From positions 41,540,001 to 41,604,000 of the forward strand of contig NC_083227.1 of assembly GCF_032191835.1 (NCBI RefSeq): a DNA stretch of 64,000 bases, read 5' to 3'. A program made the position numbers and the translations under genes. Positions 120 to 64,000 of this stretch are shown here, one piece after another; the stretch's first letter is position 1, and every line of letters starts with the position of its first letter. The DNA is from Heteronotia binoei. Its lineage: Eukaryota. The notes beneath the pieces were generated by a model. The model was not told the DNA's origin. It made no database searches and worked only from the letters and a program-made list of their open reading frames with translations.

Positions 120-2332
120 CTAGTTTATCAAGGAAGAGGCCTGGGCCCCAGAAGGGGCAGGCGAGGGGAAGGACGGATGTTGGAAGCCTCGGGAGGTGAA
201 AGGCAGGGCCCAGGGTAGATCCAGGGAAGGGATGGGGAGGGAGGAGGGAGAAGGAGGGAAGGAAGACAGGGTGGGGAGGGGGCCTGGTGAACCGAAGGAG
301 GCAGAGAAGGCTGAGGCAGGGAGAGGAGCAGCAGGCTTGGGGGTGCCAGCAGCCAGCAGCGAAGCAGGGGCTGTGCCAGTGCCAGCAGAGGCCTTGTCGT
401 TGCTATGGGTGCGCTGGTGGCGGTTGAGGTGGGAGCTGCGGCTGAAGCATTTGCCACAGATGCTGCATTTGTAGGGCTTCTCCCCGGTGTGGGTGCGCTG
501 GTGGATGGTGAGCTCCGAGCGCTGGATGAAGGCTTTGCCACAGTCCCCGCAAGCATAGGGCTTCTCACCCAGGTGGATGCGCTGGTGTTTGATGAGGTTA
601 GAGCTGACGCTGAAGCACTTGCCGCAGGCATCGCAGCGGTACGGCTTCTCGCCAGTGTGCATGCGCCGGTGCTTGGTGAGGTCAGACTTCTGGATGAAGC
701 CCTTTCCACAGTCGGCGCACTTGTAGGGCTTCTCACCCAAGTGGGTGCGCTGGTGCTTCAGCAGGTTGGAACGCACGCTGAAACTTTTGCCGCACTCGTT
801 GCACTTGTAGGGCTTCTCGCCAGTGTGCATGCGCCGGTGTTTGGCCAGTGCCGAGTTCTGGGCAAAGCACTTGCCGCAGTCTATACAAGAGTAGGGCTTC
901 TCACCTGTCTGAGTTCCTTGGTGCCGCACGCCCTCCCCCCCGCCCCTCCCGCACTCACTGCAAGCCGGGCGCCGCCAGAGGAAACTCTTGCCGCAGTCAC
1001 TGCACTTGCAGGGCAGCAAGGTCCCACGCCGGCGTTTTCGCCGCCCGCCCAAGAAACCACAGTCCATGCAACGACAGGGCAGGTGCTCAGCACTCCTGTG
1101 CACCCGCTGGTGCCGCTCCAAGTGGGAGCTCTGTGAGAAGCCCTTACCACAGTCATCGCAGTGGTAGGGCTTGTCACCAGCATGGATGCGCTGGTGCCGG
1201 TCCAGGTGGGAACTCCAAGCAAAGCTCTTCCCACAGTCACTGCAGGTGTAGGGCTTGGCAGAGCCATCGGGGTGGCGGGTGCGCCGGTGCTGAAGCAGGG
1301 CACCGTTCAGCCCAAAGCTCTTGCCACAGTCTTCGCAGACATAGGGTTTCTCTGCAGCGTGGTGCGCACGCCGGTGCTTGGACAGCGCCGCGTTCTTGTT
1401 AAACCCTTTCCCGCAGTCACCACACTGGTAGGGTTTGGTGCTGGCTTTGCTTGCTGGTGTGGTTGTGGAAGCCAGGCAGCACTTGCAAGGAGAAGCCTGG
1501 ATGCTGCCAAAGTGGATGCGCCGGTGGCGGTCGAGGTGAGAACTCCAAGCAAAAGCACGGCCGCAATCCTCACAGACGTAGGGCTTCTCACCGGTGTGGA
1601 TGCGCCGGTGGCGCTCTAAGTGCGAGTTCCAGTTGAAGCCCTTGCCGCACTCGGTGCATTTGTAGGGCTTCTCTTCCAAGTGCTGCTTTTGGTGTTTGAT
1701 GAGGTGGGCAGGAAGGCCAAAGCTCTTGCCACAGACATTGCACTCGCAGGGCCGAGCTGGGCTCGCACTCGTCTTCTTGCCCACGTGACTGCGTTGGTGC
1801 TGGATGAAGGCCGAGCCAACGCTGAAGCTCTTGCCGCACTCGGCGCAGCGGTAGGGCTTGGTGCTGGTGTGGCGCCGCTGGTGGGTCACGAGGGTGGAGT
1901 TGAGGCGGAAGCACTTTCCGCACTCATTGCACTTGTAAGGCTTCTCCAGGCCGCTGCCACTGTGCAGCCGTGAGCGCTTGCCAAAGCCAAAGCCCTTCCC
2001 GCAATCGAGGCATCGCCCGGCATGGCTGAGCAGCCCGTGGTGGCCTCGTGGGGAGAACTTCTTGAAGCCACGGTGAGCAATGGGCTTGCTGGCCTGTTTC
2101 TTCCCCAAGGACTTCTTTGGCTGCTCCTTCAGGGCTGCCTGGCCCTGGCTTTCATTGCTGGCCTTCTCCTTCGACTTCTCCTGCAGAAGGTCCTGTTGGG
2201 TGTCTACTTTCTCCACTGCAATGTTCTCCCCACCGTCTTCTTCTCCTCCTCCATCCTGTGGTGTTGCCACCGCCTCCTCCTCCTCCTCTTCCTCCTCCTC
2301 ATTCCCATTGTTACTCATCATCCCATCATCTG
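120..2332 (-). CDS. ZNF-A terminal exon: acidic N-terminal region, 15 intact C2H2 fingers plus degenerate fingers, and a 94-aa Pro/Ser-rich tail
   Basis: The ORF 120..2321 has CxxC...HxxxH repeats with TGEKPY linkers. The frame stays open to a phase-1 acceptor (minus strand ttctctcattgttccag|CA GAT GAT GGG ATG) at 2332. Stop TAG at 120-122. Confidence 0.95.
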
Positions 2333-8372: not shown

Positions 8373-8823
8373 NNNNNNNNNNNNNNNNNNNNNNNNNNNN
8401 NNNNNNNNNNNNNNNNNNNNNNNNNNNNNNNNNNNNNNNNNNNNNNNNNNNNNNNNNNNNNNNNNNNNNNNNNNNNNNNNNNNNNNNNNNNNNNNNNNNN
8501 NNNNNNNNNNNNNNNNNNNNNNNNNNNNNNNNNNNNNNNNNNNNNNNNNNNNNNNNNNNNNNNNNNNNNNNNNNNNNNNNNNNNNNNNNNNNNNNNNNNN
8601 NNNNNNNNNNNNNNNNNNNNNNNNNNNNNNNNNNNNNNNNNNNNNNNNNNNNNNNNNNNNNNNNNNNNNNNNNNNNNNNNNNNNNNNNNNNNNNNNNNNN
8701 NNNNNNNNNNNNNNNNNNNNNNNNNNNNNNNNNNNNNNNNNNNNNNNNNNNNNNNNNNNNNNNNNNNNNNNNNNNNNNNNNNNNNNNNNNNNNNNNNNNN
8801 NNNNNNNNNNNNNNNNNNNNNNN
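8373..8823. other. Assembly gap (451 N)
   Basis: Run of n. Confidence 1.
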
Positions 8824-23117: not shown

Positions 23118-23649
23118 GTGAGGAGCAGATCTCAGCTGTTTAGGCCAAGAATGCTAGAGAGGTGTAGAGGTCAGAGCATCAGACTAGGAAGACCTGCATT
23201 CAGATCCTCACTCAGCCATGCAAATCATTGGCTGACTAACAGGCAGAAGGCTGTTTGGCCCCTGAGAGGTAGAACAGCCACTCAGCTGTTTCACACCTGA
23301 ACCAATGGGAGTGCTGCTCTAGCATCCAGTCTTCTTTCAGAAGGGTGATGGGATGTTGGAGCACAGCAACTGGAAGTTGAGGGCTGCCTGAGGGATCATT
23401 TAGACAGAGAAGTCTTATAGCAAGGGAGCAGGCAATTTCCTGCATAGCTCTGCCTGGTAGTGCAGCAGACTGGTTTAACTCAATCTCTGGGTGAGGATAG
23501 AGTTGTGAAGCCTGGCTCTGGTGATGAATAGACCTGATAACTACAAGCTTTAAAAAGAATTGACCACATACTCTGTATATTGATAAATCTTCTTTGTTGT
23601 TTTATAAACCTCCCGCTTTGGTAATCTCTGTACCCTTCAGGCTCAAAGT

Positions 23650-24830
23650 TTACCTTGACTTCCAGAAAGCTTTTGATAAAGTTCCTCATCAAAGGCTCCT
23701 TAGAAAGCTCGAGACTCATGGAGTAAAAGGACAGGTCCTCTTGTGGATCAAAAACTGGCTAATTAATAGGAAGCAGAGAGTGAGTATAAATGGGCAGTCT
23801 TCGCAGTGGAGGATGGTAAACTGTGGGGTGCCGCAGGGCTCAGTACTGGGTCCCATCCTCTTTAACTTGTTCATAAATGATTTGGAGTTGGGAGTGAGCA
23901 GTGAAGTGGCCGAGTTTGCAGATGACACTAAATTGTTCAGGGTGGTGAGAACCAGAGAGGATTGTGAGGCACTCCAAAGGGATCTGTTGAGGCTGGGTGA
24001 GTGGGCGTCAACGTGGCAGATGAGGTTCAGTGTGGCCAAGTGCAAAGTAATGCACATTGGGACCAAGAATCTCAGCTACAAATACAAGTTGATGGGGTGT
24101 GAACTGGCAGAGATTGACCAAGAGAGAGATCTTGGGGTTGTGGTAGATAACTCACTGAAAATGTCAAGACAGTGTGCGATTGCAATAAAAAAGGCCAACA
24201 CCATGCTGGGAATTATTAGGAAGGGAACTGAAAACAAATCAGCCAGTATCATAATGCCCCTGTATAAATCGATGGTGCAGTCTCATTTGGAATACTGTGT
24301 GCAATTCTGGTCACCGCACCTCCAAAAGGATATTATAGCATTGGAAAAAGTCCAGAAAAGGGCAACTAGAAAGATTAAAGGTTTGGAACACTTTCCCTAT
24401 GAAGAAAGGTTAAAACGCTTAGGGCTCTTTAGCTTGGAGAAACGTTGGCTGCGGGGTGACATGATAGAGGTTTACAAGATAATGCATGGGATGGAGAAAG
24501 TAGAGAAAGAAGTACTTTTCTCCCTTTCTCACAATACAAGAACTCGTGGGCATTCAATGAAATTGCTGAGCAGTCAGGTTAAAACGGATAAAAAGAAGTA
24601 CTTCTTCACCCAAAGGGTCATTAACATGTCGTGGCGGCTACAAGCATAGAAATATGGAGCAGAGGTCCATCAGTGGCTATTAGCCACAGTGCGTATATAT
24701 ATATGTGTGTATGTGTGTGTGTGTATATATATACATATATAAATTTTTTTTTGGCCACTGTGTGACACAGAGTGTTGGACTGGATGGGCCATTGGCCTGA
24801 TCCAACATGGCTTCTCTTATGTTCTTAATG
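23650..24830 (+). mobile_element. 5'-truncated CR1 LINE with RT fragment and 3' tail
   Basis: ORF 23594..24649 contains GVPQGSVLGP and FADD motifs; tail cttctcttatgttctt. Confidence 0.95.
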
Positions 24831-25660: not shown

Positions 25661-26396
25661 TCCTTCAGTTGGCTGAGGCTCCTCCCCCTCCTGGTCCTCT
25701 GGGGAAGGAAGGAAAGAGCCAGAGCTCCCTTTGCCCAGTTCTGTGGATCACATGAGAGAGATACAAAGAAACACCTTTAAAACCAATGAGTGTTAATCTT
25801 TAATTGTGTATGTCTGTGTCCTTTATAAAGTTCATATCTCTGCTTCCTAATCTTAAATAGGTACACAGATGGCCTAGCCCAACATAGTCTGGCCCGACAA
25901 GGTCTCATTTATGTCAGATTCTGCCCTCATAACAAATGAGTTCGACATCCCTGAGTATATTGTCCTGAACTCCTCAGAAGAAGAGCAGGGTAAAATGTGA
26001 CAGACATCCACAGAATGATTGGATTATTTTCATTATGCAGTCCACCTAAGCTTGAAGTATATGCTCTCTTCCCACTTTATCAGATCCATGTCTACTGCGA
26101 GCATACATATATTCCCTTGGGCATAGAAATGGATGTCTTGAGAATTTTCTTGAGAACTTCATTCCACATCTGCCATAGAAATGAGTGTCTTCAGAATTTT
26201 AACTTACACAGTTCTGGGAGGAACCATGAGGCCTAAAAGCAGAAGTCTCAAATTAGGAAGAAATTAACCAGAACTTTTATACCATAATTATATACCATAT
26301 ACCTCAGTAAATATATGTCCTACCATCCGTTTGTTGCTGGCACTTTCAGTTCAGAGGTGATCATTTGCAGTGAATTGTCATGTCTGTGTCTTCTAG

Positions 26397-27928
26397 CAGG
26401 TGAAGGACTGGGTAGCGAGGAGGAGGAGGAGAGCGAGGAGGAAGATGTTCAACAGCGGGACGGTCCTAAGGTGGTACAGCTGGATGCCAGCATGGTTTCT
26501 GGGGAATGTAAGAGCCTTCGCTGGAGGGTGGTGCAGCAGGTTGGCAGCGGTGGCAAGGTACTGGCAGGAGAGGGGCCGCCCATCATGGTTCTGCAGAAAG
26601 GATACGAGTGCGAGGACTGCGGGAAGGTGTTCAGTTGCAGCTCGCACTACAGCAAGCACCGGCGCACACACACGGGGGAGCGCCCCTTCCGTTGCGGAGA
26701 GTGCGGCAAGAGCTTCAATGTCAGCTCCAACCTGTACAGGCACCAGAGGGCCCACGCCAATGCTAACGCTGCCCCAGTCACTCCCACAGCCTCCCTGATG
26801 CCCTCCCGTGGCCTGCCTTACCAGTGTGCTGACTGTGGCCAGTGCTTCCGCCGCAACACAGAGCTGGTAACGCACCAGCGGCTTCACACCGGTCGCCTGC
26901 CTTTCCAATGCAGCGACTGTGGCAAGAGCTTTTCGTGGAGTTCACACTTTGCCCGGCATCTGCGGATCCACACTGGGGAGAAGCCCTACCCGTGCAACGA
27001 GTGCGGCAAGCGCTTCAGCCGCAGCTCCCATCTCTACCGGCACCAGCGCACCCATGGCACCAATGCTGCTGCTAACGTCACCCGTGCCTACATCTGCACT
27101 TACTGCGGGCGCAGTTTCAGCACCACACTGCACTTCGACCAGCACCAGCGGACCCACCGTGGCCGCAAACCCTACAAGTGCACCCTCTGTGGCAAGGCTT
27201 TTGCTGATGGTTTAGCCTTGGTGAAACACCAACGTTTGCACTTAATGGGTGGAGATCAACACCACCAGTGTTCAGAGTGTGGGCAAAGCTTTGGAGGGCG
27301 GTCGCAGCTGGCTCGCCACCGTCGGCTCCATGGCACTGCTGACAAGCCCTACGGGTGTGGCGAGTGCGGGCAAAGCTTTGGTGCTCGAACCCAGTTGGCC
27401 CAGCACCGACGCCTGCACATTTCTGCTGACAAGCCATATCACTGTGGAGAGTGTGGGCTGAGCTTCACATGGAGCTCACATTGGGAACGGCATCGGCGCA
27501 TTCATACTGGGGAAAGACCGTATTCTTGTGGGGACTGTGGAAAGCGCTTTGGGCGCACCTCTCACCTCTACAGGCACCAGCGCACCCATGCTGGCGGCCA
27601 GCCTCATGTCTGTCCGGACTGCGGTAAGAGCTTCAACAGCACCTTGCACTTCCAGCGTCACCAGCACGCCCACCACCTCGACTCAGATGGTGCTCAACTC
27701 TCTGCCCACACTTGCAGGGACTGTGGCAAGCCCTGCACTGATGCATCAGCCCTGCTTAAGCACCAGTGCATGCATACAGATGACAGGCCATATCCTTGCC
27801 CCCAATGTGGGCGCCGCTTTCGTGGCACTGCGTATCTCTACAGGCACTTACGCAGCCATGCTCACCAGGTGGAAGAGACTATGCTCATACCAACGTCTAG
27901 AAAGTGTGAGGATATTGTACCATGCTAA
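26397..27928 (+). CDS. ZNF-B terminal exon, 14 C2H2 fingers
   Basis: ORF 26315..27928 carries the C2H2 array. Acceptor tgtcttctag|CA GGT (tandem alternative at 26400). Stop TAA at 27926-27928. Confidence 0.95.
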
Positions 27929-44857: not shown

Positions 44858-46770
44858 TTACAGTTGCTGACGAGAACGAAGAAGAGCTACAGGCAGAAGA
44901 GGACAGCTCAGCGAAGGTGGAGCCACCAGGTACCCAACTAGGGACATCTGATGGCCAGGGTGAGGGTAACACCAATGACAGCCAAGGCCACCTCAGCTCA
45001 GAAGAACACCAGCTGCTACAGGTGCCGACTGTACATCAGAGGGAGAGGAAGACATCCAGAAAGCTAAAAGACCAGCCTGCAGCTCCAGCTGCAGCAGAAA
45101 GACCAGGGGTCTGCATAGAGTGTGGGAAGAAGAACTTGGGTGGTAGTGGGCGAGGCCACAGTGAACCCACACCGGACAGACCGCATCAGTGTGCCGAGTG
45201 TGGACGTTGCTTCCGGCAGCGCTCCATCTTGGCTAAACACCAAAAGATCCACACAGGCGAGAAACCCTATCCGTGCACGGCCTGTGGCAAACGGTTCAAC
45301 CGTAGCTCCAACCTGGCACAACACCAGCGTGTGCACACAGGGGAGCGCCCCTTCCCCTGTGCTGCCTGCGGCAAGGCCTTCACCCAAAAATCAGACCTGG
45401 AGCGGCATCAGCGCGTGCACACAGGGGAACGGCCATACTCCTGCCAAGACTGTGGCAAGCGCTTCTCTGTCAGCTCCCACCTTGACCGGCACAGACGCAC
45501 GCACCAACACAATCCCCAAGAAGAACCCCCTGCTGCTGCCCCAGCCCCATCTGCTCACTGCTGCCCCGACTGTGGGAAGTGTTTTGGCCAGCGCTCGGCA
45601 CTCTCCAAGCACCGTAAGACTCATTCCGGTGAGCGCCCTTTCCCATGCAGTGCCTGTGGCAAGCGTTTCAGTCGCAGCTCCAACTTGGCACAGCACCAGC
45701 GTATTCACACTGGCGAGCGCCCATTCCCCTGTAGCGACTGTGGCAAACGGTTCATCCAGCGCTCTGACCTGGAACGCCACCAGCGTGTGCACACTGGTGA
45801 GCGCCCCTACACCTGCGCTCAGTGCGGCCGGGGCTTCTCAGTGAGTTCTCATCTTGACCGGCACCAGAGAGTCCACCAAGCCCAGGCTGCTGCAGCTGCC
45901 GCACACCGCTGCCCCGAGCATGTGAAGGGCTTCCTCCTCAGCACTGGGGGCAAACAGCTTCTCAAACACCAGCTGTACAGCAGCAAGGGGCGCCTCACGC
46001 GCAGCGGCCACTGCTTGGACTGCGGCAAGAGCCTGGGCAAAGTCCCGCTGCAGTTGCCGGCGCCCCCTGTTGAGAAGCCTTTCAAGTGCCAGGACTGTGG
46101 GAAAGCTTTTGCCCAGCGGTCGGCCTTGGTTAAGCACCAGCGCATCCACACAGGGGAGAAGCCGTTCTCCTGCATGGACTGTGGCAAGGCGTTCATTCAG
46201 AAATCAGACTTGACCATCCACCAGCGCATGCACACCGGCGAGAAGCCGTACCGCTGTGACACCTGCGGCAAGTGCTTCAGTGTCAGCTCCAACTTGCTGA
46301 CTCACCAGCGCACCCACTTGGGCGAGAAGCCCTACGCGTGCGGGGACTGCGGCAAGGCCTTCATCCAGCGCTCAGAGCTCACCATCCACCAGCGCACCCA
46401 CACCGGGGAGAAGCCCTACAAGTGCAGCATCTGCGGTAAATGCTTCAGCCGCAGCTCCCACCTCAACCGCCACCAGCGCACCCATAGCAACGACAAGGCC
46501 TCTGCCGGCACTGGCCTGGCCCCTGCTTCGCTGCTGACTGTCGGCACCCCCAAACCTGTCGCTTCTCTTTCCGCTTCATCCTTCTCTGCTTCCTACCCCT
46601 CACCCAACCCTCTTCCAACCTTGCCTTCCTTCCCCTCCTCTCCATCATCCCTCCCCATCCCTTCCTTGGACCTGCCCTGGTCTCTCGCCTTTCCATCCCG
46701 GGGCTTTTCTCATCCATCTTTCGCTTCTCCTGCTCCAGGCAGTGCTCAGACTTCATCCCTAATAAACTAG
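44858..46770 (+). CDS. ZNF-C terminal exon, 13 intact C2H2 fingers plus a 94-aa Pro/Ser-rich tail paralogous to ZNF-A
   Basis: ORF 44917..46770 extends in frame to the acceptor catctcag|TT ACA at 44858. Stop TAG at 46768-46770. Confidence 0.95.
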
Positions 46771-52011: not shown

Positions 52012-52196
52012 ATGGCCCCGTCCCTAGCCCTCACCAACTTTATTCTGTTCTTCATCGGAGCCGTGCTCCTCTATCAATACAGCAACACTTTTCGATATTA
52101 TTTTCGGGTTTGTTTTTTAATTGGCTGGATGCTGGGCATGTCCCTCCTCGTGCTTCCTGTTGTGGCTCTCCAAGGAAGAAATGTGGCAAATATGAG
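52012..52196 (+). CDS. AGPAT1: AGPAT1-like (1-acyl-sn-glycerol-3-phosphate acyltransferase) coding exon 1
   Basis: Kozak gccgtcATGG. MAPSL...GWMLGMSLLVLPVVALQGRNVANM resembles human AGPAT1 GWILFLAVLAIPVCAVRGRNVENM. Donor AG|gtaagt, phase 2. Confidence 0.88.
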
Positions 52197-53280
52197 GTAA
52201 GTAAACTGTTGCTCATATTTATTTATCACTGTGCCATGAAAAGCTTCAGCTCCAAGCATTAAGCCCCCGGCTGTTAAAGGGACAGGACATTTTCTCCAGG
52301 CCTCCTGGCCACTCTGCATGAATGCTGGGAACTCTAGCATGGTTAATAAGCAGACTTAAGGGAGCTAAAAGGCAAACAGTCCTTCTTTTCAAAGCGGCAA
52401 TCTTGCTCAAGTGAAGGGGGGAAAGGAACATAATTTTAGGGAAACTACCTCAAGCTGGAAAACATTTGTTCCATCAAATACTTCAAGCATCACTTTCTCT
52501 GGAAAAACGAGACCCAAAGCAGGATATAATAACTAAAACCAACCAAATTCCTAAGAATAAAATCATAGTACAAGAGAATAAAACTGGACAACAAGCCAGT
52601 ATCTAAAACATCAGCAGAGCACAGTATTATCATGAATACCCCCAAACCCTCCCTAAGAGTTTGCTGTTGCAGACTTTCTTTTTTTAAAATAGGCACATTT
52701 CTAACAGTGTCTGGAAAGGTGTTCCACTTAATAGGCCACCACAGAAGAGGCCTGAGAATCACACTAGGGTTGATTTTACTTCCCTCACAAGGAAGAGTTG
52801 CTGGAATTGGAGATGTCACATGGTTCATAGGGGGAGAGAGAGTCCTTAGAGTACACAGGTCCCAGCCAGGCTGTGAAGGGTTTCAAAGGTACAAAAACAA
52901 CAGCAGCATATTGAATTGTATTTGGAAAATATGCAGGAAACCACAGCAATTACTTTAAGGGGGGGTAATATATGTGAAGCAACAGTTAACTGAACTGCCA
53001 TAAAGCAATTGAAGTTCATATTTGTTTGTTTGTTTAAGATTTCTATCCTGCCGTTCTCAAAAACGGGTTCAGTAATGGCTCTTTGTGCTAGAAATATGTA
53101 TTTAAAAAGCAAAATAAATGCTAAGATTCCCAGGACTCTTGTGACTGCTGTCAAATTGTATCAATGGAGGATTTCACACACATGGACAGTACTGGATTAC
53201 CACCCTGCTTATATAATTCTTCCTGTTTCTCACCTGCATGGCCTATGTAAAACGTATCTGTTCTTGCCCCCTTATTTTAG

Positions 53281-53414
53281 AGTCCTCCGTTTCGTAATGT
53301 TGCCTTTGAAATACATTCTTGGCATTAGGATCAGCGTACAGGATGCTATGAACTTAAACCTGGAAGGGCCATATGTCATGGTTGCCAATCATCAGAGCAA
53401 CGTGGACTATCTTG
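53281..53414 (+). CDS. AGPAT1: AGPAT1-like exon 2, motif I (NHQSNVD)
   Basis: ttattttag|A ... CTT G|gtaggt, 134 nt; contains the HxxxxD catalytic motif. Confidence 0.92.
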
Positions 53415-55153
53415 GTAGGTTGGCACCACGATCAATCACTTTTTTTTTTTTAGTTAGCTAGCTGGCTTCTGCACCACCTTCCTTACCCAAAGATATCCAA
53501 GGCAGCTCACCAATATCTGTCTGTCTGTCTACTGGATATAAACAATAAGAAAATGTACTTGGTATAAGTACAACACAGCCAAGTTTCAAATTAATGTCAA
53601 AACAGTATAAGATAATTGAATGCCAAAGCCAGCATTATCTCATCAAAGAGTCATTTAATCATTCAAAGTTTTCTGTAAAAAAAAAGAAAATGTTTTCAGA
53701 TCCTTCTGTGAAGGCTATAGAGGATGTGGGGGAGTTCTTTAGATGGGCAGCAGCTGAAAAGACTTCCCATGGATCTCTGCTGGGCATGCATCAGATTGCA
53801 CAGCTACCCTCTGGAAGGCTTCACTTGATGACCTTATAGCCTTGATAGGCTGAAGTGGCAGAAAGCCATCCTTCGGGAAATTTGGACCAAACAGCTTTAA
53901 AAGTCAAAAACAACATCTTGAATTCGGCTTAGTAGCAGATGGGAAGCTAGTGCAGCTGACGTCAAAAAAACAGTGTCACATGTTCATTCCGGCAGGTTCC
54001 CATTGAATATTCCAAACCATCTTCAAGAGTAAAACCATGCTGCACATGTTGTCACCCCCCCCCCCCCCCGCATTCATATTGCTGGAAAGGCCCAGAAACT
54101 CCCTTGCTATAAGGCAGGTCTAGTTGACCCACCTCTAACAGCCTTGTATGGTCCAGACCACAGTCTGCTATCAGCAAAGCAATTGACCTACAGAGAAAAT
54201 AACCTGAAACTGATTTGAGGCCAGTAACACCTTAGAGACCAACAAGATTTTGAGGGTATCAGCTTTTGAGAGTCAAAGCTCCTTTCGTCAGACCTATAGA
54301 GAAAATAACCTGAGGCTGACTTGAGACAAATACCTGACAAAAGGAGCTTTGACTCTCAAAAACTTATCCCCCCGCCCCCCCCCCAATCCTTGGTCACTGG
54401 AGTGCTTCTGAACTCTAATCTAGTTTTTCTACTCTGGACTAACATGACTATGCTTCTGAAACTAACCTGAGATTGACACTGGTGAACATGAGTGGGTACA
54501 ATCAAATAGGGAGTGCCAGTATCATGATTAATGGCAGTTCAGGTGTACCATCGTAAAGCATCAGTTTTAGACATTAGTAGACAAAGAACTTGTTTATTTT
54601 GTAATCCATCCTAAATGTGGTAATTAGATCCTGAGCAAAGCCAAAACATCATCTAAAGAGAAATTTAGCTGCCCCTGTCATCACTATTATCACCCAAGAA
54701 CTCCCCCGGATTTACTTCTTGTGGAAGGGAGTGGGGAAGAACCTTTCCTGACTTGAATAGTCCAGACAATGCAGTGCATAGCATTAACATAACAAGCATA
54801 GTGAATGTCCATCTAGTTCATGTTTCCTGCAATGGCCAGACATCTCCTGCTACCTGAGTGGGGTCTTGAACCCAGTTACCTTGGCCCAAATCTAATATGG
54901 TACAAACTGCATCTTAGGGTACACAATGGAGCAAACCATAGCTCCCCAACACTGGTCAGAAAAATGGCCTGAGAGACCCAATCCATCCCCCTACAGTAGT
55001 CCTTCCATCCCTGACTACTGCACTAAATGAGGACAACACTGGGAGCTCCAGGCACTATCTCATCTGGTTTGGTGCTGTCCTAAGGAAGGTGGTGGTGGTG
55101 GGGAGGTTACAACTGACCACACTTTCTGAATTGCTTCCTTATATCTAACCCAG

Positions 55154-55326
55154 GGTTGATTCAGATCTTGCCAGGGCGATCCACCCTCATTGTCACAAAA
55201 GACATCTTCTACATGCTGACGGTGGCAGTGGTCTGCTGGCTGAGCGGCTTCATTATCATTGACAACAAGGTAGCAGATACCACCCGCGCCATGACAGCAG
55301 TAGCAGAGACCATGATCCGGGACAAT
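55154..55326 (+). CDS. AGPAT1: AGPAT1-like exon 3, divergent motif II
   Basis: aacccag|GG ... AAT|gtgagt, 173 nt. GLIQILPGRSTLIV...CWLSGFIIIDNK aligns with GMMEVLPGRCVPIA...CWLAGVIFIDRK. Confidence 0.88.
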
Positions 55327-56184
55327 GTGAGTAAAGAACCGTGTGCCTACAGCGCAGCTACCACCTGCCAAATCAGAGTCTCTGCCTCCCTGCACATAGA
55401 CCAAAACAGGATCAGGAGTTGGGCTCACCAACACTCACGTTGGTACCCCCAAACTAAATACCAACCCCATCCACATATTATTTAAAACTCATATCTATGG
55501 ATTCTTGAAGGATGTTCTTGGAGCTCTATTTAACGTTGCAATGCTGACAGCAGGACAAGAGTCTCCTTAGAGAAATCAGTAAGTGGATGAGCTAGTGGCA
55601 ATCAGTCATGTGGATCATGTGTTTGTAATTACCTTATGTACATCCTTATCCAGGTCTTTTTGTCAAAACTCCAATGGGCATAGCAACATGATTGCATTTA
55701 GGGTTGCCAACCTCCAGGTAGCACCTGGAGACCCCCCACTATTACAGTTGATCTCCAGATGACCAAGATTAGTTCCTTTGCAGAAAATGGCTGCTTGGGA
55801 GGGTGGTTATATGACATTATACCCTGCTAAGGTTCCTGTTCTCCTCAGGCCGCACCTTCCCCAGGGAACACCCCCAATTCTCCAGAAATGTCCAGAGACT
55901 CTAGGTTGTGTGTGTGTGTGAAAGAGAGAGGGGGGGAGAGGGAGGGAGAGAGAGAGAATGAGAACCTTACTAATCCCCCAACAATTGCATTACATTTCCA
56001 TAAAATTCTGCCAAACTAAGTATCATAATGGCTCAGGAGAGCAGCGTCCCTGGTTGTCAGTCTCTGGTGAACATAGTGCTACAGGAAAACCAACAGCCAT
56101 CAAAACATCATTCAAAACACCCTGCAACACTGTACTGTTGATCTCTACTTGTCATTTCTGTTTTCTCTTTCCCTTCTCCTCCAG

Positions 56185-56280
56185 CTGCGGATCTGGGTGT
56201 TTCCTGAAGGCACCAAAAACTACTACACCACCATGCTGCCATTCCAACATGGGGCTTTCTATCTGGCTGTGAAAGCTCAG
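56185..56280 (+). CDS. AGPAT1: AGPAT1-like exon 4, motif III (WVFPEGTK)
   Basis: cttctcctccag|CTG ... CAG|gtgaga, 96 nt. Confidence 0.93.
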
Positions 56281-58840
56281 GTGAGATCCTCTACCTCGCA
56301 GTCATATGTGTGTGTGTGTGTGTGTCAGGGATGCCAGCCTCCACGTGGAACCTGAGGACCCCCTAGAATCACAGCTCATCTCGAAACTACAGGGAACAGT
56401 TCCCCTGAAGAAAATGGATGCTTTGGAGGGTGGCCCTTGGCACTGTACCCCACTGAGGTATCTGTCTCCCACAGACTCCATCCTCAAATCTCCAGGAGCT
56501 TCCCAATCTGGATCTGGCAACTCTACCCCGCCCCCATCCCCTGTCAGGCGGACCTGGCAACCCTAGTTGTGTGAAGTACCATTAAGCCACAACTGATTTA
56601 TGGTGACCCCTTCATAGGGTTTTCAAGGAAAGAGACTTCAGGGGTGAACTGCAGTTGCTGTCTCTGGGTCGTGACCCAGTACTTCCTTGGTGGTCTCCCA
56701 TCCAAATACAAACCAGGCCCTACCCTGATTAGTTTCTGAGATCTGACAAGATCAAGTTAGCCTAGGCCAGGGCTGTCAAACTCATTTGTCACGAAGGCTG
56801 GATTTGACATAAATGTCACTTTGTTCAGCCAGGCCATGTGTGCCATAAAATGTAACATGAGATACCAGATACATAAACTTTGTAAAGATGATTTCAGATG
56901 CTGAATGGCAATAGCAGGCTTGCAGAAGGGTGAAAGGCATGGAGATGTCAGTATTGGTAATGTGACAGGAAACGTAGGTCTCAGTTTTGTACAGGAGGAT
57001 GCAAGGAAGAAACAGAAATGTCAGAAGAAGTGAGGAGTGACTCACAAAAGAACATACCCTACCACAAATTCTGTTAGTATTTAAGGTGCTACTTGACCTT
57101 TGCTCTTTTCTACTGCTGTTAGGCAACACGTCATTGAAAAAACAGTGGGGGAACATTTTAACTTTCCAGGACATTCAGTTGCTGACCTAAGAGCAGCAGT
57201 CTCTTATAAAGGGATTTCAGAGGGAAACTAGAAACACTGCTGAATTGCAACTGATAATGAAGCTCAAGGCAAAGCATCCTCCTGGACTGAAATGAAACTT
57301 AGGCTTCTTCTCTCATTACCAATGCCTACTATTGTAATTTGGCATCCGAAATCACTTCACTCTCCACAATATAAGGATCGATGGACTCACATTCTAATCT
57401 AGCTACATCTGAAGAAGTGAACAGTGGCTCATGAAAACTCCTGCCCTGCCACAAATTTTGTTAGTTGTTAAGGTGCTGCTGGACTCTTGTTTTCTTCCTC
57501 TAATAAAGAATGCAAACTGTGCTGTTAGGTTTCTTCCCCCCCCCCTCCATCTGTAAGAAATGGCTTGCTCTTTCCCTCCCCGCTTCCTCTCTCTCTCTTT
57601 CCCTCTCTGAAGTGTGCAGGCACACAAAACCTATACCAGGAATAAAACATTGTTGGTCTTAAACACTGAACTCCATTCCTCTTTCTCTCTGAAGAAGTGT
57701 GCAGGCATACAAAAGCTTGTACCCGGAATAAAACGTTGCTGGTCTGCTGTCAAGAGATGCCATTTTCCTCTCTCTCTCTCTGGCTCTTTTCGTCGTCCTT
57801 CTCCCCCAGAAAAAGAGGATGTGGAGGAACCCTCAGCCAACTGAGGGAGGGCTTTCTGTCGCTCCTCTGTGAAGCAGGAAATAAGAGAAACTATGTAAAA
57901 GAGCTGCAATGCAAGAAACAGGATAGCGGAAGCAGCAGAGGGACAGTTCCTTGGTGGGATATGGCCCGTGGACCATATATTTGACACCCTTGGTCTAGGC
58001 CATCCAGATCAGGGCAGTCTTCCATATTAGCTATTTATTCATATTGATAACAATGTACCTGAGCTCTTCAAGGCTGCCTCTCACCACAGTTGCTTTCATT
58101 AGTTAAATTTTAACCATGTCTCCAGACTGGGCATTTGAACAGATTCATGCTGCCACGCCTGCTGATCCATACCCATTGCTGGCAGTGACATATAAAAGCA
58201 ATGCACTGGCCAGCTGGGTTGATTTATTCTTTTTTAGGGCCCTCTACCAAGAGCTTTTTTATTTATTTAAGCAATCTAAAGGAGGCCATCATTGCACTCC
58301 TCTTTTAGGGAGAACAAATCCATATCTAGCTAGTCTCAATAACTATAAGCCTGTATCCTCTAAAATATAACGGAGTGCCCAGCAGACATTTTCCTTTCCC
58401 CTCGCTTTCTGATTATCCTGAAGCAGGGAAAGGGCCTCCCAACTGGGGGATCCTGTCCCTAAATGGGGATTGGCAACCTACTTCCGCATTAAACCCATTT
58501 GTGTCCTTCCCTATAGGCATTGTTTCATGTTTGCCTTCAAAAACTGAGATCTCCCTAAGTCCTGCTATTGTTTTAATCTACTGTTGTATTGCTGCTATCA
58601 TGTTCATTAATATTTCAGTATCTTATTGGTATTTCAATTGTTTTACATTTGTTATACATGGTTTTGAAAGCATGGTTTAGAATCTCAGTAAACAAAGAAG
58701 TCACCTAAAACCATACAAAATGAGATAGAATAAAACAACAGGCAAAAAATACCCCTACAACATCAGCAATCAGAATAAGGCCACTCAATGATCAATAGAA
58801 ATTTGATAAAGAGTTGTAACTGTGTGGCTTTGCACAGCAG

Positions 58841-58913
58841 GTCCCAATCATTCCTGTGGTGATGTCCTCATACCGACCTTTCTTCAACAAGAAGATCCAA
58901 AAATTCATTCCAG
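58841..58913 (+). CDS. AGPAT1: AGPAT1-like exon 5, motif IV (VPIIPVVMSSY)
   Basis: gcacagcag|GTC ... CCA G|gtaagt, 73 nt. Confidence 0.92.
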
Positions 58914-59791
58914 GTAAGTGGTAAGAGTGGAATGGAATGGAAATGGGTTTGTGAGGTGCTGACTTGGATTGTGAAATACAGGCATCCCAGTGCATTGCAT
59001 CTCAGCATGCAGTAAGCAATCCTGCTTCTCCACCTGTTCCTCAGGTTGCTTGCCTCATCTCCTGAAGCAGATTTCCCCCCCTAATCTCAGAAGCTCGTAG
59101 AAAAGCAAGGAGGAAGCATGAGAACATGAGCCTGGCCCTTGCTGGATCAGGCCATCAGTCTATTTAGTCCTACATCTAGTTTCCCACAAGGTTCATTGAG
59201 CAGCTGGCCAACAAGCAGGGGCACAAAGGCCAAAGCCTTTCTCTATTGTTACCCCCAGTAACTGGCATTTACAGGTACACTCCCTCTGAATATGAAGGCT
59301 CCATTTAGTCTTCATGGCTAATGGACATTGATTGACCTATCCTCTATTTATTTAAACTTGTTTCAATTTAAAAAAAAACAGAAGAGCAGGATTGCCAACT
59401 CTGTGTTGGAGAATACCTGCAGACTTTGAGGAAGGTGCCTGGAGAGGGTGGGGGTTGGGGAGAGGAGGGACTTCAGCAGGGAAGATGAAGAGTATTGGAA
59501 ACCTGCCCTAGGTATAGGAAATTATTAGCTACTGCCCTTCAGTCCCTTTCACTGGAAATGTCTTACTGCAGCTAGTACTGTGGTTCTGCTCCAAAGCTGT
59601 GGCCCCTCTAAGATAGTGGGATAGGGAAGAATCAGACTCTTCCAACTTGGCAGGGACAGTCTATTGTTCTTGCAAAATGGACATTTCAGTTTTAACTGTA
59701 TTTCAGGTATGTTAGCCATTGAGTATAGGAAACAGGTTTCACATCTGGTTCTATATAGCAGTTCCTTTGTTCCTGGGTTCTTCTTCTACAG

Positions 59792-59934
59792 GGCAAGTGA
59801 CAATCCGGGTCCTCCCACCAATGAAGACAGAAGGGCTTGTTTCAGCTGATGTCCCAGAACTCACAGACCGTGTGCGGGAAGCCATGCTCTCCTCCTTCCA
59901 TGAGATATCAGAAGGCACAAGAGAGCATGAATAA
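59792..59934 (+). CDS. AGPAT1: AGPAT1-like last coding exon; total CDS 804 nt, 267 aa
   Basis: ttcttctacag|GG; QVTIRVLPPMKTEGLVSADVPELTDRVREAMLSSFHEIS; TAA at 59932-59934. All six exons join in frame. Confidence 0.92.
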
Positions 59935-62599
59935 ATCACCAAAGAAGCCATCTATTGCCAAGAAACTTAGAAACCATTCCTCCCCCCTCACCTTGACCCA
60001 TAAAATCATTTTCAACTATAAAAAAATGTAAATGTTTGCTCAGAAACCAGGGATTTAAAAAGTGTCTGTGTATGAACGTTTACTTGTCACAGCACAGTAA
60101 AAGAAGATGCCAGGAAAAGACAATTAGGACAAGAACAGGTTGCAGCTCAGTGGCAGAGCATCTGCTTGGCATGCAGAAAGTCCCAAGTTCAATCCCTGGC
60201 ATCTCTAGATACAAGGATCAAATACTAGGTGATGTGAAAGACTTCCACCTGAGACCCTGGACAGCCACAACCAGTCACTACTGACTTTGATCAAAGACCT
60301 GATTCAATATAAAGCTGTTTTGTGGGTCTGTTTGCCCACCTTAATGTTGTTCAAAAGCATAATAGACAATGGACAAAATTAATTAGCTTACATATTATAG
60401 TGAGAAAACTTTTTAAAAAAAAAGGATTCTAAAAGGATTTTTAAAAAGTCTTTAGCAGAGTGTTCCTGTTACCACAGTTTCTTTGTGCCACTCACTGTGT
60501 ATGAAATAAGCAGCATCTCTCTGGAGAACACACACATTGATTTGGATCCGTGAAAGGCTGGAGGGCAGGCCACTGCTACCACTGAGACTTCCTGCAGCCT
60601 TTGCTGTACAGGAAGGCAAGGCACCATTGTGAGGCAAGCACCTGTTGCCATAACAACCGACTCCAGCAAAGACTCGCCAGGGACAGCTTGGGCCTGGGCC
60701 AGAGGGATCCTGTTGGGAAGAAACCTTCACAACCAGATTGTGAAGCAAGACAGATGTCGCCTAGGCCATCCCTGACTGCTGGACCCAAGGCCCGTGTACC
60801 CTTAATTTTGCCCTAGAGAGCTCAGCCTTACCGGACTCAGGTAAACAAGGCTCAAGTAGAACCATCTCATTTAGTATCCCCCCCCCCTTTCCTATTGATC
60901 TCTTCCAGATCACACTGATGCATGTAGCATTAGCCCCTTCCCGCAGCTTATTTTGATCTATTAGTTCATATGGGTTGCAAGTTGCCTATGACTGTTCTGG
61001 GGAAGGGGTGTTCCATTTCCTTATAATTGGAAGAACTGTGCTACTGTCTGAAACCCTTTCTTATTTCTCTGTTCTCCTCCCCTGCCCCAGATAAGATGTG
61101 GGCCCATCCCAGGGACATCCAGAGCAAGGATACTATTGTAGCCAACATACTGTACAGAGATCATTGGCCTGATCCTGCAAGGCAGTTCTAGTGTTCTTGG
61201 CTAATATGCATGTACACATCTATGTGCACATGAATGCCACAGATCTTTAAATATTATGGCCTTTGGTGCAGGAATATCCACTTTCTTTGTTTGCAGTTTC
61301 TGGGGCCTTCTTTATATTCTTTTCTTTTAAAAAGTCTATTTCCTTTGTATTCTTGTATCTGCAGATGGATGCATGAAACAAATTGGGAGGGGTGAGCGGT
61401 AATAGGTAGTAAAGGCTGAGGGCCTAAATGTACACAATGTTGTTTTCATGTCCCTGCTTTGTCCAGTACTGTCAACTGGACATATACTGGGAGTTCCGTC
61501 CTTGGGATTTAATTACCAGGGGGGCAATTTGGATCAGAAACACTGTGTGTCAGGATGAGGGGGCTTAAGCCTACCCCTCAGTGCCATATTCCTGATAAAC
61601 TAGTCCAAGATGGCTACTGTTTGTCCTACTGGGGAGATATACGTGCACTGATGGGGTGCATATGAGTGTGATATGCAAGTTTCTCCTGTGGAGCAAACAG
61701 AGGCTTCCTGGGGCTACATCCCATCAGGAGACTGGTATGGGGAGGAGGCCCTCTCCCTGCACGCTACACTCCCAATCTTAATGGTACCATGAATGCCTAG
61801 GAATTATGTTCTGAGCACATCGTCATCTGGTCAACAGAACCAAGCAGACATGAGGACCATGTAATGTATACTCAGGCCCTCAGTAGTCTTGCATCCTGAT
61901 GCTATGCATATTTATTCCAAAATAAGATACACTGAATTCAGAGGGACTAAATATGCAATCATGTGCAGCACTGCTCCACTTTAAACCCACTAGGTTTAGG
62001 CTTGGAATTACTTGGTTATATAGATTGCACTGTAAGTGCTTCTTCTTGGAAGACAATGGTGGAATTTCTCATAAACGTCAGAAAGGTCTTGAGATGACAC
62101 AGATGCTGTTCTCCTCCAAGGCTCTAGTAGTTTTGTCCAACATGCACTTCCCATTTACTACTCCAGTCTTTTTTATTTAAAAAGAAAAGTAATCAAATTA
62201 GAGTATGTTACACTACCTAAATTAAATGAAGAACTATACACGAAATTAAAACATCTTTGGTTTAAGATTTTGGAGATAGCTCTATTAAGACAGGCAAATA
62301 ACCAGTAGCTCCGTTGTTGTTTTTTAAAGATCAAGCTGAATAATGTATTTGTGAGGTTTCACTTAAATAAGGAAAGAGTGTTTCTAGTCTTCACTGATAT
62401 GAAGGTATGCTTCTTTTTGGTCTGACATATTATGCTGCTCAACACATGGCAATGTGTCCCTTCTTTATGGTAGACAGATATTGCTAGGCATACACACAAA
62501 AAGCCAGCAGAGGGTACAGAGAAAGCTTTATTCAGAGGGTTTCAGTACAAAGGAAGGCAGGGCAAACTTTCTTTGTTCAGGCACAAACTTATATCTTGG

Positions 62600-64000
62600 A
62601 AAACGAATCAGCTTTCAAGAGGACGGGAAGGTAGCAAATGTCACCCCCATCTTTAAAAAGGGTTCCAGAGGAGATCCGGGTAACTACAGGCCAGTCAGTC
62701 TGACTTCAATACTGGGAAAGTTGGTAGAAACCATTATCAAGGAAAGAATGAGTAGGCACATTGATGAACATGAGTTATTGAGGAAGACTCAGCATGGGTT
62801 CTGTAAGGGAAGATCTTGCCTCACTAACCTGTTACATTTCTTTGAGGGGGTGAACAAACATGTAGACAAAGGAGACCCGATAGATATTGTTTACCTTGAC
62901 TTCCAGAAAGCTTTTGATAAAGTTCCTCGTCAAAGGCTCCTTAGTAAGCTCGAGAGTCATGGAGTAAAAGGACAGGTCCTCTTGTGGATCAAAAACTGGC
63001 TAATTAATAGGAAGCTGAGAGTGAGTATAAATGGGCAGTCTTCGTAGTGTTCATATGTTCTCTGGTTCTTACCACCCTGAACAATTTAGTGTCATCCGCA
63101 AACTTGGCCACTTCACTGCTTACTCTCAACTCCAAATCATTTATGAACAAGTTAAAGAGGATGGGACCCAGTACTGAGCCCTGCAGCACTCCACTGCTTA
63201 CTGTCCTCCACTGTGAAGACTGCCCATTTATATTCACTCTCTGCTTCCTATTAATTAGCCAGTTTTTGATCCACATTGTGAGGAACTCCAAAGGGATCTG
63301 TTGAGGCTGGGTGAGTGGGCGTCAACGTGGCAGATGAGGTTCAATGTGGTCAAGTGCAAAGTAATGCACATTGGGGCCAAGAATCCCAGCTGCAAATACA
63401 AGTTGATGGGGTGTGAACTGGCAGAGACTGACCAAGAGAGAGATCTTGGGGTTGTGGTAGATAACTCACTGAAAATGTCAAGACAGTGTGCAATTGCAAT
63501 AAAAAAGGCCAACGCCATGCTGGGAATTATTAGGAAGGGAATAGAAAACAAATCAGCCAGTATCATGATGCCCCTGTATAAATCGATGGTGTGGTCTCAT
63601 TTGGAATACTGTGTGCAATTCTGGTCACCACACCACAAAAAAGATATTATAGCACTGGAAAAAGTGCAGAAAAGGGCAACTAGAATGATTACAGGTTTGG
63701 AACACTTTCCCTATGAAGAAAGGTTAAAACGCTTGGGGCTCTTTAGCTTGGAGAAACGTCGACTGCGGGGTGACATGATAGAGGTTTACAAGATTATGCA
63801 TGGGATGGAGAAGGTAGAGAAAGAAGTACTTTTCTCCCTTTCTCGCAATACAAGAACTCGTGGGCATTCAATGAAATTGCTGAGCAGTCGGGTTAGAACG
63901 GATAAAAGGAGGTACTTCTTCACCCAAAGGGTGATTAACGTGGAATTCACTGCCACAGGAGGTGGCGGCGGCTACAAGCATAGCCAGCTTCAAGAGGGGG
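62600..64000 (+). mobile_element. CR1 LINE ORF2 region with an internal inverted segment (about 63058-63275); runs off the window end
   Basis: Plus ORF 62454..63047 (DPGNYRPVSLTS, YLDFQKAFDKVP) and minus ORF 63004..63291 (QGSVLGP, FADD) are adjacent parts of the same RT. Confidence 0.93.

Follow-up and report, generated by a model that had tools for sequence, protein, structure and literature searches.

The stretch of DNA analysed here, called the window below, comprises 64,000 nucleotides of the gecko Heteronotia binoei (NCBI RefSeq assembly GCF_032191835.1, contig NC_083227.1, positions 41,540,001 to 41,604,000 of the forward strand), and positions are counted from its first letter. At 52012-59934 it holds a gene for a protein of the AGPAT1 type. 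AGPAT1 and AGPAT2, which acylate lysophosphatidic acid (LPA), stand at the core of phospholipid and triglyceride synthesis, and the arginines of their motifs are textbook acceptor-binding residues. A first-pass annotation of the same DNA had proposed that the gecko gene is an intact, lineage-specific AGPAT1 paralogue that has lost these arginines. We use the label L for the clade of AGPAT1 paralogues that includes this gene.

Gene structure and protein fold

Splicing the window sequence by script gave six exons on the plus strand and a coding sequence (CDS) of 804 nt, i.e., 267 codons and a TAA stop. Every acceptor has AG and every donor GT, and a pyrimidine-rich stretch lies 5′ of each acceptor. 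The translation is identical (100%, 267/267) to RefSeq protein XP_060095282.1 (P0058, “AGPAT alpha-like”, Heteronotia binoei), whose gene maps to CM063329.1:41.59-41.60 Mb of assembly GCA_032191835.1. The clean 267-residue frame with canonical splice sites, read at first from the letters alone, is borne out by both results. The gene model is already present in RefSeq through automatic annotation, and the existence of the gene is therefore known. A tblastn search with the spliced protein matched only its own six exons in the window, with no second AGPAT-like copy.

Exon 1 (52012-52196) starts with the ATG at 52012, encodes residues 1-61 and two bases of codon 62, and ends at a GT donor; it contains the FRYYF and RGRNVxN stretches conserved in L and two N-terminal membrane helices, predicted at residues 2-23 and 25-54 in an AlphaFold2 model. 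Exon 2 (53281-53414) gives a PF01553 match on its own and carries motif I, NHQSNVD (53387-53407), with the codons of the catalytic His99 (CAT, 53390-53392) and of Asp104 (GAC, 53405-53407) intact. Exon 3 (55154-55326) contains IVTKDIF (55189-55209) and motif II, FIIIDN (55249-55266), the last codon of which (AAC, 55264-55266) places Asn144 at the site of human R149. One codon is deleted directly after it, as the first-pass annotation had noticed: exon 3 measures 173 nt in Heteronotia alone, the other copies examined all having 176 nt. Exon 4 (56185-56280), again matching PF01553 by itself, holds motif III, FPEGTK (56200-56217), with Lys175 (AAA, 56215-56217) at the site of human R181, followed by PFQHGAF (56239-56259). 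Exon 5 (58841-58913) opens with an intact motif IV, VPIIPVV (58841-58861), in a stretch strongly conserved across L, and exon 6 (59792-59934) ends with the TAA stop at 59932-59934. Apart from the shortened exon 3, the coding exon sizes are those of AGPAT1 (185/134/176/96/73/143 nt); in snakes the last L exon has 182 nt instead of 143.

An AATAAA at 59930-59935 overlaps the stop codon in Heteronotia only, other geckos ending in TGA. No further AATAAA or ATTAAA occurs for about 1.5 kb 3′ of the stop, and therefore the 3′ untranslated region (UTR) of the Heteronotia gene is either extremely short or long. CpG islands at the start regions of L and AGPAT1 were compared and proved uninformative.

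The whole protein matches the entire PF01553 profile over residues 78-205, with 96.8 bits against a cut-off of 23. The AlphaFold2 model, for which 54 sequences were aligned, reaches a mean predicted local distance difference test (pLDDT) score of 86.9, and the two internal blocks with the lowest scores coincide with the loops of motif II (residues 141-150) and motif III (171-180). Its best match in the PDB is PlsC of Thermotoga maritima (5KYM; E 4e-11, template modelling (TM) scores 0.64/0.72), followed by a plant GPAT, PatA and human GPAT1. The same 5KYM was the sole match of the family profile among PDB sequences (E 3.7e-25), and the 57 residues of exon 3 alone matched no PDB sequence. L clearly keeps the PlsC fold. 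Both it and the Thermotoga protein have the acyltransferase core and, at the N-terminus, a membrane anchor of two helices; the Thermotoga protein differs in having the canonical FLDRK and FPEGTR, and the two are 21% identical.

An old duplicate of AGPAT1

Relatives were gathered by searching exon 3 alone against a representative library of 1.84 billion proteins, which gave 46 matches, the best full-length one being a protein of 283 residues (P0007). L was found in at least 27 squamates, as full-length models, and in crocodilians. Identity is 78-89% among geckos and 56-66% to other squamates, and L is about 48% identical to vertebrate AGPAT1. The automatically named “AGPAT alpha-like” proteins of Paroedura (XP_077180902.1), Anolis (XP_062829802.1), Python (XP_007434672.1) and Crocodylus (XP_019402001.1) are orthologues of the Heteronotia protein; their motif states vary by lineage and none has the one-codon deletion.

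The gene is not the sole AGPAT1 of its genome. A canonical AGPAT1 of 268 residues (XP_060094940.1, P0205) lies on the same chromosome at 18.59-18.64 Mb, about 23 Mb from L at 41.6 Mb. In Eublepharis and Paroedura the canonical gene adjoins a gene with EMI and EGF domains that resembles EGFL8, the neighbour of AGPAT1 in human. L sits in another setting, flanked by a C2H2 zinc-finger gene on one side and by a tektin gene on the other, with all three on one strand. Both flanks were observed in Heteronotia, Eublepharis, Paroedura, Pituophis and Crotalus, the tektin side alone in Podarcis and the zinc-finger side alone in Sphaerodactylus; the Lacerta agilis locus has no recorded gene under exactly that product name.

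The phylogeny called for by the first-pass annotation agrees with this. In a maximum-likelihood tree of 69 proteins, with support from the Shimodaira–Hasegawa-like approximate likelihood ratio test (SH-aLRT), squamate L and the Crocodylus protein form one clade (support 99); a further split (support 95) sets this clade and two bird “alpha-like” groups apart from canonical AGPAT1, represented by fishes, amphibians, mammals, turtles, birds and squamates. The Heteronotia gene thus shares both the monophyly and the gene order of L, and neither groups with AGPAT1 nor has its EGFL8-like neighbour. A squamate-only duplication, with squamate L and squamate AGPAT1 forced into one clade, was marginally rejected by the approximately unbiased (AU) test (p = 0.042), and Crocodylus, both Alligator species and Gavialis each have an L-type gene in addition to canonical AGPAT1. 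From these two observations, L is an old sauropsid duplicate of AGPAT1 and not a gecko invention; it is a paralogue and not the AGPAT1 orthologue. The term “lineage-specific” consequently holds for only part of the picture: the gene extends to squamates and crocodilians, with related groups in birds, while the particular residue states described below are gecko-wide.

Birds have, besides canonical AGPAT1, two further AGPAT1-like groups of about 300 and about 269 residues, both with canonical motifs (represented in the tree and in protein clusters by P0077, P0102, P0029, P0201 and relatives). The chicken “AGPAT alpha” proteins XP_024999833.2 and XP_040548004.1 fall in the group of about 300 residues. 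A six-exon chicken “AGPAT1” was reported as unexpressed in every tissue tested (PMC6726641). Because the chicken “AGPAT alpha” proteins fall in an L-like bird cluster, the gene studied in that report may be a paralogue and not the true orthologue, as far as sequence clustering can tell.

Acceptor and catalytic residues

Our alignment comprised 27 L and 12 AGPAT1 proteins of squamates, the latter including that of Heteronotia itself. The AGPAT1 motifs are invariant in 12/12 (NHQSSLD, IAKKELMY, GIIFINRKK, FPEGTRNH..MLPFKRGAF and VPxIPxV). Against this background, Heteronotia L keeps motif I (NHQSNVD in place of NHQSSLD) and motif IV (VPIIPVV), and changes IAKKELM to IVTKDIF, motif II from GIIFINRKK to GFIIIDN-K (Phe to Ile, Arg to Asn, one codon gone), motif III from FPEGTR to FPEGTK and PFKRGAF to PFQHGAF. 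All of the changes listed in the first-pass annotation, given there relative to human AGPAT1, reappear in the comparison with the animal’s own AGPAT1 and the 11 others. They are not chance differences, because the positions concerned do not vary in any of the 12 squamate AGPAT1 proteins.

The positions at stake have been mutated in the human enzyme. Motifs II and III are assigned to acyl-acceptor binding (reviewed in PMC4280512). In human AGPAT1, F146A and F146Y markedly reduce activity (mutagenesis of Yamashita et al. 2007; PMC4280512); R149A abolishes it, R149K retains much of it with lower affinity for LPA, and R181A and R181K both abolish it, as does the equivalent R318K of mouse GPAT1 (PMC4280512). 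A positive charge is evidently needed at R149, since R149A is dead and R149K largely active. The claim that the arginines of motifs II and III matter for activity is well founded, R149A and R181K each being sufficient to abolish that of human AGPAT1. The Heteronotia equivalents of F146, R149 and R181 are I141, N144 and K175, so that both arginines that mark an LPA acyltransferase are missing. Because Ile, Asn and Lys occupy sites at which mutants of human AGPAT1 lose activity or have it reduced, the Heteronotia protein very probably should not be a working LPA acyltransferase, judged from its residues. On the curated LPA acyltransferase model TIGR00530 (EC 2.3.1.51, cut-off 102.95), the animal’s own AGPAT1 scores 131.8, Heteronotia L 98.7, marginally under the cut-off, and python L 78.2.

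The losses are not confined to Heteronotia, and they take a different form in each lineage. In all six geckos (Heteronotia, Paroedura, Gekko, Sphaerodactylus, Euleptes and Eublepharis), motif I is intact, the R149 site reads N, D, D, D, D and H, respectively, and motif III reads FPEGTK; neither of the two arginines found in every squamate AGPAT1, and indeed in all AGPAT1 and AGPAT2-like sequences aligned, is therefore present in any of the six. The codons point to simple substitutions, from Arg CGC to CAT (His), GAC (Asp) or AAC (Asn) in motif II and from AGG/AGA to AAA/AAG in motif III. IVTKE/D instead of IAKKE is likewise common to 6/6, the two central residues of PFxxGAF vary (QH, KQ, RH, KK), and no change is found in the HX4D dyad, in the E-G-T of motif III or in motif IV.

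In nine snakes, motif I reads NLQCSxD, with Leu for the catalytic His, motif II FIDH and motif III FSEGHR (FSESHR in Ahaetulla). Three lacertids have NQQCNVD, with Gln for the catalytic His; they keep the Arg of motif II, and two of the three have FPEGTG. The cordylid Hemicordylus has NQQGNVD, again with Gln for His, and Tyr at the R149 site, and has lost motif III. Motif I is intact in Tiliqua (Cys at the R149 site, FLEGPR) and in Varanus (Tyr, FPEGTQ). Anolis, Sceloporus, Elgaria, Rhineura, Crocodylus and both bird groups are canonical in motif I, the motif II site and motif III. The catalytic His, present with its Asp in Heteronotia, was thus lost three separate times in the L clade, in snakes, in lacertids and in the cordylid. 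For Podarcis, Python, Pituophis and Crotalus, the genomic DNA reproduced the L coding sequences exactly, and therefore these losses lie in the assemblies and are not repairs introduced by annotation.

Selective constraint

We estimated constraint with Nei–Gojobori pairwise counts and, taking omega = 1 as the null, with the GY94 codon model of IQ-TREE, on coding sequences re-derived exactly from genomic DNA; here, omega is the ratio of the nonsynonymous (dN) to the synonymous (dS) rate. Comparisons with Eublepharis AGPAT1 isoform X1 were set aside, as its alternative last exon inflates dN. Between Heteronotia and Paroedura, L has dN 0.061, dS 0.250 and omega 0.24 (P(omega<1) 4e-8), and AGPAT1 has dN 0.013, dS 0.272 and omega 0.05 (P(omega<1) 7e-20), so replacement sites evolve about five times as fast in L at equal dS. 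Snake pairs, all of them diverging after the loss of the catalytic His, give dN 0.058-0.072, dS 0.208-0.252 and omega 0.28-0.35 (P below 3e-5). Under the codon model, omega is 0.35 for eight L genes (p = 3e-32), 0.32 for gecko L (p = 3e-15) and 0.45 for His-less snake L (p = 5e-5). Purifying selection maintains L, including those copies that lack the catalytic base. The marks of a pseudogene, i.e., a broken frame, lost introns or an omega near 1, are not what we find, with six intact exons and omega values of 0.24-0.35 that are significantly below 1.

Fitch counts for the 27 squamate L proteins on the accepted squamate tree indicate where this constraint acts. Sites change 3.3 times on average and 46/267 never change. 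Conserved stretches are FRYYF, RGRNVxN, GPYV, N98/Q100/D104 of motif I, a WL pair, AQVPxxPVVxSSY and KTEGL. The R149-equivalent site has changed at least seven times (93rd percentile of variability), the R181-equivalent site at least five times (79th percentile) and the catalytic His site at least three times (57th percentile), all three being invariant in AGPAT1. From these counts, selection thus no longer guards the acceptor pocket and the catalytic base but still maintains the scaffold.

Neighbourhood of the gene

The C2H2 zinc-finger gene upstream of L, its conserved left neighbour in geckos and snakes, has its last exon at 44917-46770 (plus strand, zf-C2H2 match). Two more long exons of the C2H2 type lie at 120-2321 (minus strand) and 26315-27928 (plus strand), and each of the three encodes 11-15 fingers. 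On the right, the tektin gene (PF03148; L011 24273-27923) follows L directly on the same strand, about 6.3 kb past its stop and beyond the window; tektins are proteins of cilia and flagella.

Several repeats were also observed. Open frames with an RVT_1 domain at 23594-24649 (plus strand, E 2e-25) and 62454-63047 (plus strand, E 9e-17) are probably remnants of long interspersed nuclear elements (LINEs). Just 3′ of L, at 60140-60200, we noticed by eye a tRNA-like head of a short interspersed nuclear element (SINE; GGTTGCAGCTCAGTGGCAGAGCATCTGC...GTTCAATCCCTGGC). Introns 3 and 4 of L seem to contain one copy each of the same interspersed repeat (about 55700-55880 and 56320-56540), with common strings recognised by eye (...CCAGCCTCCA.GT.G.ACCTG.AGACCCCC...). 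A run of N occupies 8373-8823.

Discussion

The likeness of L to vertebrate AGPAT1, including the canonical copy of the same genome, extends to exon plan, PF01553 domain, PlsC-like fold and intact motifs I and IV. L differs from it in its flanking genes, its separate clade, its I, N and K at the sites of human F146, R149 and R181, its fivefold dN and its TIGR00530 score below the cut-off. We consider Heteronotia L a retained AGPAT1 paralogue that is most likely not a conventional LPA acyltransferase, and it is rather probable, as judged from the comparative sequence data, that the function under selection does not involve LPA acyl transfer. We reach this reading because the acceptor arginines and the catalytic His change like ordinary sites and other parts of the protein are fixed.

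We hypothesize the following course of events. A duplicate of AGPAT1 would have kept the PlsC fold, the exon plan and the N-terminal two-helix membrane anchor; in the geckos, replacement of both acceptor arginines would have abolished conventional LPA acylation. The remaining role could be, e.g., that of a catalytically weak or dead protein of the endoplasmic reticulum (ER) membrane that binds lipid or acyl-coenzyme A (acyl-CoA), or that of a partner of other enzymes. Gecko L would represent the mildest stage of erosion, and with its His-Asp dyad in place, some residual acyl transfer to another acceptor may persist. For gecko L itself, a retained function independent of LPA acyl transfer, with weak catalysis or none and with binding of lipid or acyl-CoA or partnership with other ER proteins in its place, is a tentative proposal to which we give slightly less than even weight. 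More tentatively still, the squamate L clade as a whole may be a family of AGPAT-derived pseudoenzymes with a role independent of acyl transfer, whose active site was dismantled differently in each lineage: geckos would have lost the acceptor arginines, snakes the His, the Arg and PEGT, and lacertids and the cordylid the His, on a scaffold held by purifying selection since the gecko–snake split. In such a family, gecko L might bind lipid or acyl-CoA, or partner with or regulate other lipid enzymes of the ER.

Several observations weigh against the proposal that L has left LPA acyl transfer behind. The unchanged HX4D dyad, E-G-T and motif IV of six geckos fit a still-active enzyme. K175 keeps the positive charge, and the R181K result was obtained in vitro with a human protein that is 48% identical. 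An omega of 0.3 denotes constraint and is silent on which activity is constrained. Finally, squamate lineages may have followed different functional paths, and data from snakes and lacertids need not apply to geckos.

The main rival idea is that gecko L is neofunctionalised and still catalytic, acylating with acyl-CoA an acceptor that lacks a phosphomonoester (e.g., another lysophospholipid, a neutral lipid or an alcohol). The intact catalytic elements in 6/6 geckos and a gecko omega of 0.32 agree with it, and the residues lost are mostly basic ones to which acceptor binding is ascribed. There is also a precedent in LPCAT1 and LPCAT2, which like L have a non-Arg residue after PEGT, in a family that otherwise shares motifs I–IV, and which acylate other acceptors (PMC4280512). 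Both have extra domains and are only distantly paralogous to L, with no orthology to it; they act on lysophosphatidylcholine and lyso-platelet-activating factor, and the residue in question is Cys, not Lys. We nevertheless regard a new acceptor as unlikely, since the motif II site is unfixed among geckos (N, D, H) and PFxxGAF varies, which looks like relaxation rather than a tuned pocket, and since orthologues in the same syntenic slot were retained after losing the catalytic His three times. No data indicate a candidate acceptor; the monoacylglycerol, wax alcohols and skin or gland lipids suggested in the first-pass annotation found no evidence in this analysis. Between its two broader options, a changed acceptor or a pseudo-enzyme, the comparative data lean towards the latter, the His-less orthologues still being under purifying selection.

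It is improbable that L is simply a second AGPAT1-type isozyme that tolerates the substitutions and acylates LPA in the ordinary way. It is true that L can still be recognised by its overall fold and by each of the four motif blocks, that it misses the TIGR00530 cut-off narrowly (98.7 against 102.95), and that R149K is tolerated in human AGPAT1 (PMC4280512), but residue 144 is Asn and not Lys, R181K alone abolishes the activity of the human enzyme, as does the equivalent change in mouse GPAT1 (PMC4280512), and neither arginine varies in any aligned AGPAT1 or AGPAT2-like sequence. Even more improbable is a functionless copy, unexpressed or dispensable and on its way to becoming a pseudogene. 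The fivefold dN relative to AGPAT1, the widespread erosion of catalytic motifs in the clade and the lack of transcript-derived (Logan) members in any L protein cluster, with such members present in AGPAT1 clusters, would all suit decay. The last of these is a weak negative and no more than a hint of low or tissue-restricted expression. For Anolis, the L gene has several predicted isoforms. Decay is at odds with the intact frame and canonical splice sites in every genome checked, the full-length models in 27 squamates, the omega values significantly below 1 in geckos and snakes, the 46 sites invariant across the clade and the synteny conserved since the gecko–snake split.

Our full-text literature searches found no paper on the L clade, on reptile “alpha-like” AGPATs or on AGPAT1-type pseudoenzymes, and the sole vertebrate match for the “alpha-like” name was a synteny table for paddlefish. 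The automatic names “AGPAT alpha” and “alpha-like” in reptile and bird annotations cover proteins that are non-orthologous and probably not equivalent. Within a single syntenic slot, L offers a graded series, from canonical (anoles, Rhineura and crocodiles) through arginine-less (geckos) to histidine-less proteins (snakes and lacertids), with purifying selection acting throughout. This series constitutes a comparative system for the role of the AGPAT scaffold apart from LPA acylation and for the residues that set the choice of acceptor.

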